A stretch of 64,000 nt of DNA, from positions 133,625-197,624 of the forward strand of contig MNCI01000825.1 of NCBI GenBank assembly GCA_015680685.1, read 5' to 3'. Source of the stretch: Gnetum montanum (Eukaryota; Plantae; Gnetophyta). Numbering within the stretch: the first letter of the stretch is position 1; each line of letters starts with the position of its first letter. The notes below the pieces were generated by a model. That model did no database searches and was not told where the DNA came from. It was given only the letters and a program-made list of their open reading frames with translations. Of this stretch, positions 12,701 through 15,700 are shown piece after piece. Made by a program: the position numbers and the translations under genes.

Positions 12701-15700
12701 CTTGGACAAAACTAGTTTTTAAGGTATCATAATGCTACTAAAGATAGATGATATGTAATAGATGCATCAATCCTTAGGATTATGAGAACTAGCAAGGTTT
12801 CATCATATCAATAATTTGTTAAGTCTAATAAGGGAAGGAGGTACATAGGCCCTATAGTCATCCCATCATTATGAGTCGCATCCCTATTAGTTGTTAATGT
12901 AAGTATAATCCCATGTTTTTAGAAGATTGGAAAAGAAAAAAAATTTGTACTAATTTTTAAAGAGTGGTTATTAGGGGTCCTATAGATCAAGAGGAATTGA
13001 ACCTAAGATTTAGCAAAATTAGAATTTTAAAATATTAAAAGTTGCAAATTAGAAAATTGAACCTGTAACCTATTAGAATATATTTTTCAATCATGGAAAG
13101 AATTGAACTCATGACTAGGTGGTGTGAAAAAGGTTTTATTAAGAAAAAAGAAAATAGAGACAAGGATAACAGTATTCAACAAAGAATCAATTACAAGAGA
13201 CAACCTATCTCTTGAATTCCACTAGCAATTATAAAAAGTGGAGAGTGGGGAAAGGAAAAGATAAAAAAGAAAAAGAAGAGTGTGTGTGCATATAGGAAAG
13301 AAAGAGAGCTCAATCACAAGGGAGTGTGGCTGGAAATGAACAACAAAAGGAAGACTATGGTTGAAATAGAAGATGAACAACAACAACAACAAATTGTGGC
13401 TAAAACAGAAAATGAACAACAACAAGAGAAGACTATGGATAAAACAAAAAATGAATAGCAATAAGGCTGCGGTTGCTGCATAAGACATCGAATTAAACAA
13501 ATTAGAGCTAAGTTGCAATCCAACATAGTGATTAAGTATTCTTGGTAAGCAAGAAGGTCAAATGTGTCCTTCTCTTGCTATGTGTGATGGACAACATTGG
13601 CTGGTTATCTTAATATCTCAGCTCTTTTCCTTTCTTTGGCTTGAATATCTTTTTGTGTCTGAATCAACTTTGACAAGATTTGTTGTTGGATCTCTCCACC
13701 CATCCTTGGCACTTTCAAGTATAAATAACTTGGATGAGAGTGGCTTTTGTAACAATTCAGAAATACCCATAACAATTTGGGCCATTTTTGGCATAACGAT
13801 TTGCCAACAGGGGCCAAGGATCCTATATATGAAGATTTGTGCCACTAGCAGAAAGTGACTATCCTTAGGCCCATGTCAATTTTGTGATTTTCTCAAATTT
13901 ACAAAATCATTGAATTATTGGTTTTTGGTTAGAAATTGGCATGAAGAACCCCTTTGAATGCTTAATTCTTGGATTTGAATTTTGATTCTTATTTGTGTAC
14001 CTTCTCATGTTGGATTTTGTTATATTTCTATGAATCCAATAGAGTGAGGGAAATCTAGGATGTGAATTTATGGTCGTTAAATATTAGTAAACTTAGTTCA
14101 TGGCTGTTATGTTAATGATTTCTCTATTCTCTATTGTTCACAAAACCACACCTGATGCTTACAGTTGCCAGGGAAGCCTAATGCAATGACAAGTATCCTG
14201 CTCCTAGGCATGGATTGCTTCCAGCACCACCCTGTGGTGCTCCGTGTCGACAAATGCAGCTGCTTGTTGGAAGTCCTTTAGAGCCTCCACCTTGGCCGCA
14301 CACTCCTCTGCAGTCCCCCATCCATCAGAATGAAACACTGCAAACGTCCTTTGAATATGCCTCTGTAATGTCGTCCAAGGCGTATTAGAATTAATATTCA
14401 TGACAACGTATGGGCATTTCCCCTCCTCCAGCCACCTCCTCGCATTCTACTCATGGGCTTGATCTATCTATCGCTAGAGCTCTTTTGCCTCACGCTCCTC
14501 CCTCTCCCTCTGCTCCCGCTCTACCTACTTTGACTCCACTTTTTGCTTCTCCTCCTGTGGCAATTCCATACGAATTTGCTCCCGTAGTGAGTCTTCAAGA
14601 GTTGCCCTACTTGTAGCCTCCTTCAGCTCCCACCTCCTCTTCAACTCTTGCTCCCTTTCTACAAACTGTTGCTCAGCCATCCTCATGTCGTGGCTGAACT
14701 CCTACTCCCTTGCTTCCCACATATGATGCTCTTCCCACCAAACACAAGCAATGACCTCCTTAGGAACCCTAGCTGCAATTGCCTCTGTCTCCTCCAAAAT
14801 AGCATTCGTGTGGGCCTCATACACTACCATTTCTATGTCCAGGCTCCTAATCTTGGCGTTGGCCTCCGCCACCACATAATGGACATCTGCCTTAGCCCTG
14901 TCAACCGACACGGCCTCCCTCTTTGGAACAAGATCACAATAAGACTCACCAATCTCATCACCCCCAAGCTGCATCCACCCCTACAAGGCCAGCCGACGGC
15001 TATACACCACCCTCAGCTCAAGCCTCAGTGGCCTAGACACCGCCGACATCACCACCTTCCAAAAGGCCAAAATAAGCCCTAAATGGTGACCCCACCATTG
15101 CCACTTGAGAACCTCAAAGAAGAAATGAGGCAGGTTGACCCTACAACCAAGTTTGAGACATTAGGAAGGAGAAGTGGACCCCCTGCAACAAAGAATCGGT
15201 CCACTAACTCTGCTGCCAGTTGTCAGAGCTAGGGCAAGGCAAATTTGGGCACCTGCCCACTTGCTATTTTCAAGATATTCCCATAAAAGAAAACTTGCGC
15301 ATCCTGCAAGCCACAAGCCTAGGGCAGGATAACATCACCAGTCACCGATGCACCAAGAGAGATAGAAATCACCTCAACAGTTAGAGGGATGTGAACCCCT
15401 CAAAAAATTGTGACATCCTCCTACCAATTGTGGTAGGAGTCAATTGCTAGATCCAAGTCCCCCTTTAGTAGCTCCAAAACCTCCACCCATCCAGCCCACT
15501 ACACCAGCATCCAAAGCTCCGCATTATCCTAGTAAGCTATGCAATCTAGCTCAAATATTGGCATCTACCGCATCGTCGTTGTCGCTTCCCTCCACAGCCG
15601 CACCCCCTCCTGCACAACCTGAGTCAGCGATGGCAACCTAATCAACCGAAAAATTAAATTATTGTGAGCGCACCATAGACTCCACAACATAGTCGTCACA

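Follow-up and report, generated by a model that had tools for sequence, protein, structure and literature searches.

A J-domain-like domain under selection at the 3' end of a plant L1 LINE of Gnetum montanum

J-domains (DnaJ/Hsp40, PF00226) are helical domains of about 65–70 amino acids that dock on Hsp70, trigger its ATP hydrolysis and lock it on a client protein. A module resembling them was found at the 3' end of a plant L1 long interspersed nuclear element (LINE) within a 64,000-nt stretch of Gnetum montanum DNA from contig MNCI01000825.1, referred to here as the window, whose positions supply all coordinates. The window holds three mutually divergent copies of this LINE, numbered 1 to 3, and the last 66-codon domain of their 3' module is the J-like part. 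Like a J-domain, it combines a start of the type (D/N/C)-P-Y-x-(V/I)-(L/M), a predicted basic helix and, in the majority of the copy-2 subfamily, an H-P-D motif exactly 26 residues past the conserved Tyr, followed by a second long predicted helix. Unlike described J-domains, it scores below any family threshold, carries Asn in place of a conserved Gly and reads H-S-D in the window copies; the helix III/IV signature (F..I..AY..L.D...R..YD) can be followed in it only roughly, and with indels.

Retrotransposons depend on host chaperones, and to our knowledge none encodes its own Hsp70-recruiting module. A functional parallel is polyomavirus large T antigen, which carries an N-terminal J-domain and represents a selfish element that encodes such a module; it differs in that its J-domain is N-terminal in a DNA virus protein, whereas that of the LINE would be C-terminal in a non-LTR (long terminal repeat) retrotransposon. 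In architecture, type III J-proteins such as E. coli DjlA and auxilin-like proteins are similar, since their J-domain forms the very C-terminus and follows a long non-J region, although they are cellular rather than transposon-borne genes and the likeness to them is limited to the general J profile. Among LINEs, plant L1 elements with an extra RNase H domain after the reverse transcriptase (RT) have been described (Smyshlyaev et al. 2013, as cited in PMC5203782). They share with this family the plant L1 backbone of a DUF4283-bearing first open reading frame (ORF1), AP-endonuclease, RT and zf-RVT, as well as an extra module at the coding 3' end; the module here has no Pfam match and comprises, instead of RNase H, an unknown domain followed by a coiled-coil-like linker and then the J-like domain. 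A survey of L1 elements in 125 plant species gives RNase H as the sole ORF2 domain variant and does not mention DnaJ (PMC5203782), and the literature searches made here found no retrotransposon with a J-domain, in agreement with a sequence-only reading of this DNA, which had known of no LINE with such an architecture.

A selected coding domain and its family motif

The J-like domain is encoded on the minus strand in copy 2 (14219..14416, from C-P-Y to V-L-E, with H-S-D as CAT TCT GAT at 14332-14324) and on the plus strand in copy 3 (28470..28667, with H-S-D as CAT TCG GAT at 28554-28562). Both peptides quoted by the sequence-only reading are present with exactly matching translations, and its count of 28 identities over 66 ungapped positions holds, compared with a mean of 3.5 and a maximum of 11 in 20,000 shuffles. 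By tblastn, copy 2 and copy 3 share 44% identity across 79 amino acids (E 6e-20), and blastn detected no nucleotide match between them. As had also been noted, both peptides run into a C-x-C-x-R-L tail (14159..14218, minus strand, in copy 2) and end in a terminal stop at the equivalent codon, at 14161-14159 in copy 2 and 28725-28727 in copy 3. Each bears one private premature stop, at 14206-14204 in the tail of copy 2 and at 28617-28619 in copy 3.

A Nei-Gojobori comparison of 98 codons between copies 2 and 3, with two other frames as controls, gave proportions of nonsynonymous and synonymous differences of 0.43 (pN) and 0.80 (pS, saturated). Identity at the first, second and third codon positions was 50, 64 and 35%, a pattern absent from the two control frames. 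Saturated third positions beside conserved second positions indicate that the LINE lineages diverged to saturation while the protein sequence was kept. The segment is a protein-coding domain under purifying selection, and its conservation in two divergent copies, as originally claimed, is confirmed.

The motif of the wider family was determined by placing contigs of DNA runs from three species, together with the reads of one RNA run, on positions 14000-16300 at 80% likeness; the result covers the copy-2 subfamily and reports single observed differences. Several paralog contigs span the J-like region at about 80–83% identity. At 14329, the first base of the copy 2 Ser codon, the window has T where paralog contigs have C on the coding strand, so that TCT becomes CCT and Ser becomes Pro. 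Pro accounted for 52.4 of a total depth of 57.4 in run X1 (7 contigs), 68.2 of 73.2 in run X2 (8 contigs) and 29.6 of 49.9 in run X7 (4 contigs), and was present in the one read (1/1) of RNA run X17. Since most paralog contigs in three species read CCT, the motif of the copy-2 subfamily is HPD, and the H-S-D of both window copies departs from it.

The other private differences of copy 2 follow the same course. Copy 2 reads TAG where paralogs read CAG at 14476, so that decay has made this stop, in the linker at 14476-14474, private to copy 2 (most or all paralog contigs read CAG there); it also reads CAA for CGA at 14352 (Arg to Gln), TTT for CTT at 14335 (Leu to Phe) and TGT for CGT at 14302 (Arg to Cys). 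All are of the C>T or G>A type, and transitions made up 480 of the 633 variant places in run X1. An excess of transitions is expected for methylated plant repeats. The Ser of copy 2 arose from Pro by C-to-T decay; the TCG of copy 3 lies one C-to-T step from CCG, and its Ser may have come about by the same route. Both window copies are dead. The sequence-only reading had correctly reported that the Ser codons differ (TCT in copy 2, TCG in copy 3) and had taken HSD to be ancestral to the family. That conclusion is overturned: most paralog contigs read Pro at the copy 2 Ser codon, and the different codons lend it no argument.

Resemblance to J-domains and the principal alternative

On balance, the domain is somewhat more likely than not a real, highly diverged J-domain. 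A J-domain hidden Markov model (HMM) was built in-house from 84 bona fide members, comprising 80 viral or giant-virus sequences and four from E. coli (DnaJ, CbpA, DjlA and HscB), with a mean pairwise identity of 51%. It was run in hmmsearch with filters off, using 5000 shuffles, 433 natural non-J sequence windows and reversed sequences as controls. The copy 3 piece scored 8.0 bits, reached by 16 of 5000 shuffles and by none of the 433 natural sequences, and the copy 2 piece scored 2.9 bits, reached by 29 of 5000 and 6 of 433, respectively; the top natural non-J score was 5.0 bits, and reversed copies scored below 0. In both copies the model placed the Tyr of P-Y on DnaJ Tyr7 (Y13 on Y7) and H-x-D on His33-Asp35 (H39 on H33). 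Aligned with hhalign, the two-copy profile scored 16.9 against the 84-member alignment (P 0.011), a value that 5 of 600 column shuffles equalled or exceeded; against 64 enterobacterial DnaJ J-domains, a reference set that is too narrow, P was 0.098. Columns invariant between copies 2 and 3 tend to coincide with J columns of high information content (P 0.0135), and by this measure only one of 51 offsets outranks the proposed register.

Evidence of a different kind is supplied by the family majority. At the HPD state, a Pro in place of Ser raises the J HMM score by 6.1 bits, and the majority change Q32R adds 2.0 bits and fits the conserved Arg of helix II; C49R lowers the score by 0.85 bits. The restoration of the hallmark Pro in the majority is new and moderately strong evidence for a J-domain, and not stronger, because C is often the source of a T in a decayed repeat. 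An AlphaFold2 (AF2) model from the two-sequence alignment places H-S-D (39-41) in a loop flanked by helices at 24-38 and 46-62, which presumably correspond to DnaJ helices II and III in the proposed register (helix limits of PDB 1XBL). The alignment was limited to two sequences because metagenome and viral contigs yielded no further copies of the module.

Several observations weigh against J-domain identity. The AF2 model is of low confidence (predicted local distance difference test, pLDDT, 53), and Foldseek against PDB and VIA-align (wide) returned only generic helical hairpins; at such confidence, and with matches of so general a kind, the fold searches are uninformative. Asn replaces the Gly of the L-G-V motif, a helix III/IV match requires indels, and the majority change F38L lowers the J HMM score by 2.6 bits. 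The hhalign probability is 3.9%, and the best J HMM score, 8 bits (about 14 would be expected with Pro), lies far under the expected curated cut-off; neither copy reaches the curated PF00226 threshold. Pfam hmmscan of all module pieces returned no relevant family and, at E<=10, no DnaJ, which is a weak negative for one family named in advance because HMMER filters hide P values above about 1e-5. Profile searches gave no match among PDB sequences at E<=10 and no J-domain protein among 1.84 billion protein representatives, where two matches were spurious, being tandem-repeat proteins, and the ESM Atlas gave no usable match. Finally, the J hypothesis was picked for its resemblance, so that a P of about 0.01, uncorrected for the families implicitly considered, proves little alone.

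The earlier proposal that the spacing matches the J-domain consensus therefore survives in part. Its register was reproduced by the filter-free J HMM and hhalign for both copies (P about 0.003 to 0.014), and the match does not extend to Pfam, to PDB or, without indels, to helix III/IV. The checks it had suggested were similarly divided: comparison of profiles gave the hhalign P of 0.011 at low probability with no Pfam match at E<=10, and structural modelling put helices on both sides of the motif in a model whose only matches were generic.

The reading that survives best beside a J-domain is a selected, lineage-specific C-terminal domain of a LINE accessory ORF that is unrelated to J-domains, in which H-P-D and its spacing are coincidental; such a domain could be a small helical one, for example for RNA or protein binding or for multimerisation after a coiled coil. 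This is a substantial possibility, though short of likely. It fits the blank database and fold searches and the hhalign probability, and helical hairpins are very common; moreover, with T so often derived from C in a decayed plant transposable element, a TCT derived from CCT is only a moderate coincidence. It accounts less readily for the way in which both copies fit the J profile, keeping a single register between the P-Y start and H-x-D, for copy scores equalled by only 0–1.4% of natural sequences, for a family majority that restores both the hallmark Pro and the helix II Arg, and for conserved columns that coincide with J core columns.

Linkage to the LINE and layout of the copies

Its domains and insertion signature mark the element as a plant L1. 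Copy 2 runs on the minus strand from about 20100 to 14000, with domain matches along the strand. Its ORF1 fragment carries a plant-L1-type DUF4283 (19371..19547, minus; PF14111, 47.2 bits) and a zinc knuckle, and its ORF2 retains an N-terminal AP-endonuclease fragment (Exo_endo_phos, 18524..18721, minus; PF03372, E 1e-4) and a piece with a zf-RVT match (15829..16239, minus; PF13966, 25.2 bits, E 2.6e-5) in a frame that differs from that of the 3' module. Copy 1, also on the minus strand, reaches from about 6000 to the start of the window, with RVT_1 at 2123-2434 (E 2e-5). Fragment scores fall slightly below curated cut-offs because the copies are broken. By blastn, the sole match of copy 2 elsewhere in the window is a 128-bp RT stretch of copy 1.

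The 3' module stands behind zf-RVT in copies 1 and 2. In copy 2 it forms a single frame of about 334 codons interrupted by stop codons only, passing from module A (L-G-x-x-V-N-L-P-x-F-F ... G-L-I-L-A-x-W; 14984..15160, minus; 43% identity to copy 3, E 6e-9), with which the common 3' ORF begins, through a charged, coiled-coil-like linker with several in-frame stops (14447..14980, minus; similarity to copy 3 at E 1.7e-6) to the J-like domain and the tail. Module A is present in all three copies; in copy 1 it lies at 242..447 on the minus strand (E 1.5e-4 to copy 3), and the remainder of the module, including any J-like end, falls beyond the window start. The module lies outside Pfam and the protein databases searched.

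Copy 3 is a 1,244-bp LINE 3' end on the plus strand (27796..29039), consisting of module A, linker, J-like domain and a 3' untranslated region (UTR) of about 310 nt. Both its ends border on a perfect 15-bp target-site duplication, AAGTCTACTATCTCA at 27781..27795 on the left and the identical AAGTCTACTATCTCA at 29040..29054 on the right (both plus), with a short terminal A run before the latter. The duplication, the A run and the confinement to the 3' end mark copy 3 as a LINE that inserted by target-primed reverse transcription (TPRT) and was truncated at its 5' end. It is nested in a decayed Ty1/copia element (about 25000-31800, plus) with gag-like and integrase regions, having inserted between the integrase SH3 domain (SH3_retrovirus, 27157-27480) and RVT_2 (29664-29909). 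In each DNA run, about 300 paralogous contigs align to the region 14000-16300, and contig depth across the module is about that across zf-RVT. The J-like module moves with the LINE, and on this point the earlier claim of linkage is upheld by the truncated, duplication-flanked copy 3 and by the module's place behind zf-RVT in copies 1 and 2.

Downstream of zf-RVT, the ORF2 of copies 1 and 2 stays in a single frame as far as a stretch common to both, reading G-L-Q-D...I-L-K-I-x-S-G-Q-V-P-K...E-L-V-D-R-F-F-V (15232-15318 and 525-617, minus, in copies 2 and 1, respectively), which has no Pfam match at E<=1. Module A begins about 40–70 nt beyond it in another frame in both copies, and the frame shift is of equal size at the two junctions (15120-15240 in copy 2 and 425-545 in copy 1, minus). 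Two extra bases at 15160 occur in about 30% of paralog contig depth and leave the ORF2 and module frames unjoined; with them, the sequence upstream of module A resembles copy 3 (H-F-x-F-L-K-C-L). In copy 1 an ATG stands exactly where module A starts. Instead of a fusion, the junction pattern could reflect a frameshift site or an independent ORF3; with every window copy decayed, an ancestral in-frame fusion would be as compatible with the sequence as these two. The statement that ORF2 ends in the J-like domain is not supported by either copy that keeps the junction, and of the related claim that the LINE captured the domain and kept it on its ORF2 protein, retention by selection and travel with the LINE stand, while the fusion to ORF2 finds no support.

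It is very improbable that the module is a host-gene fragment acquired by 3' transduction, or an unrelated neighbouring repeat, rather than a standing part of the LINE. The broken frame link from ORF2 to the module in both junction-bearing copies and a window without an intact copy would allow such an origin. Against it, the order of the module behind ORF2 is the same in three mutually divergent copies, copy 3 was moved by TPRT as a 5'-truncated unit ending in the module and its own 3' UTR, and the module and zf-RVT have similar contig depth. Least probable of all, and nearly negligible, is a chance ORF or a non-coding conserved 3' sequence such as an RNA element recognised by the RT: RNA recognition elements can occur in LINE 3' ends, but this reading is contradicted by the codon-position analysis, with its signal-free control frames, by protein identity without detectable nucleotide similarity and by the equivalent placement of the stop codon in copies 2 and 3.

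The locus of copy 2 was found at about 98% identity in two further species, in one contig of 705 nt with 11 differences and another of 1,297 nt with 23 (14629-15925), so the insertion predates their split. Transcripts of the LINE family exist; an oligo-dT RNA library gave a few reads on the region at 80–95% likeness, in both orientations. Just past the LINE 3' UTR, at 14000-14076, contig depth rises to 300–750, and many contigs carry a 27-nt insertion near 14116-14119, which suggests a neighbouring high-copy repeat or a variable 3' UTR end beside copy 2. Elsewhere in the window, the only ORF of at least 170 amino acids (41847-43235) is an artefact that runs through an assembly gap (a run of N) in a region of about 25% GC, and it was ruled out as a real gene.

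Proposed role and meaning

The domain is coding, selected and mobile with its LINE, and it carries HPD in most paralogs. The LINE 3' end is best read as holding an accessory reading frame of about 334 codons, running from module A through the charged, coiled-coil-like linker to the domain of about 66 amino acids and the C-x-C-x-R-L tail; in the copy-2 subfamily, HPD lies in a predicted loop flanked by two helices. If the resemblance of the domain to J-domains reflects homology, its form in active elements might bind Hsp70 and set off ATP hydrolysis, with the HPD loop and basic helix II docking where the nucleotide-binding and substrate-binding domains of Hsp70 meet. ATP hydrolysis would then lock Hsp70 on a nearby client, most likely the large ORF2 protein or the ribonucleoprotein (RNP) itself. 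Chaperone activity brought in this way could serve folding, assembly, remodelling, nuclear entry or disassembly at the target, and the coiled-coil-like linker could multimerise the protein. It is accordingly proposed, tentatively and with more doubt than the J-domain assignment itself, that this plant L1 family may encode a working Hsp70 co-chaperone whose C-terminal HPD J-domain, present as an ORF2 extension or in a third ORF, is needed for RNP assembly or integration, which would make it the first retrotransposon known with a J-domain.

Even if the domain is not a J-domain, an abundant plant LINE carries a selected protein domain that is absent among 1.84 billion protein representatives. If it is a true J-domain, this LINE would be a mobile element that brings its own co-chaperone, as some DNA viruses do, and it would provide a direct handle on the role of Hsp70 in LINE replication.

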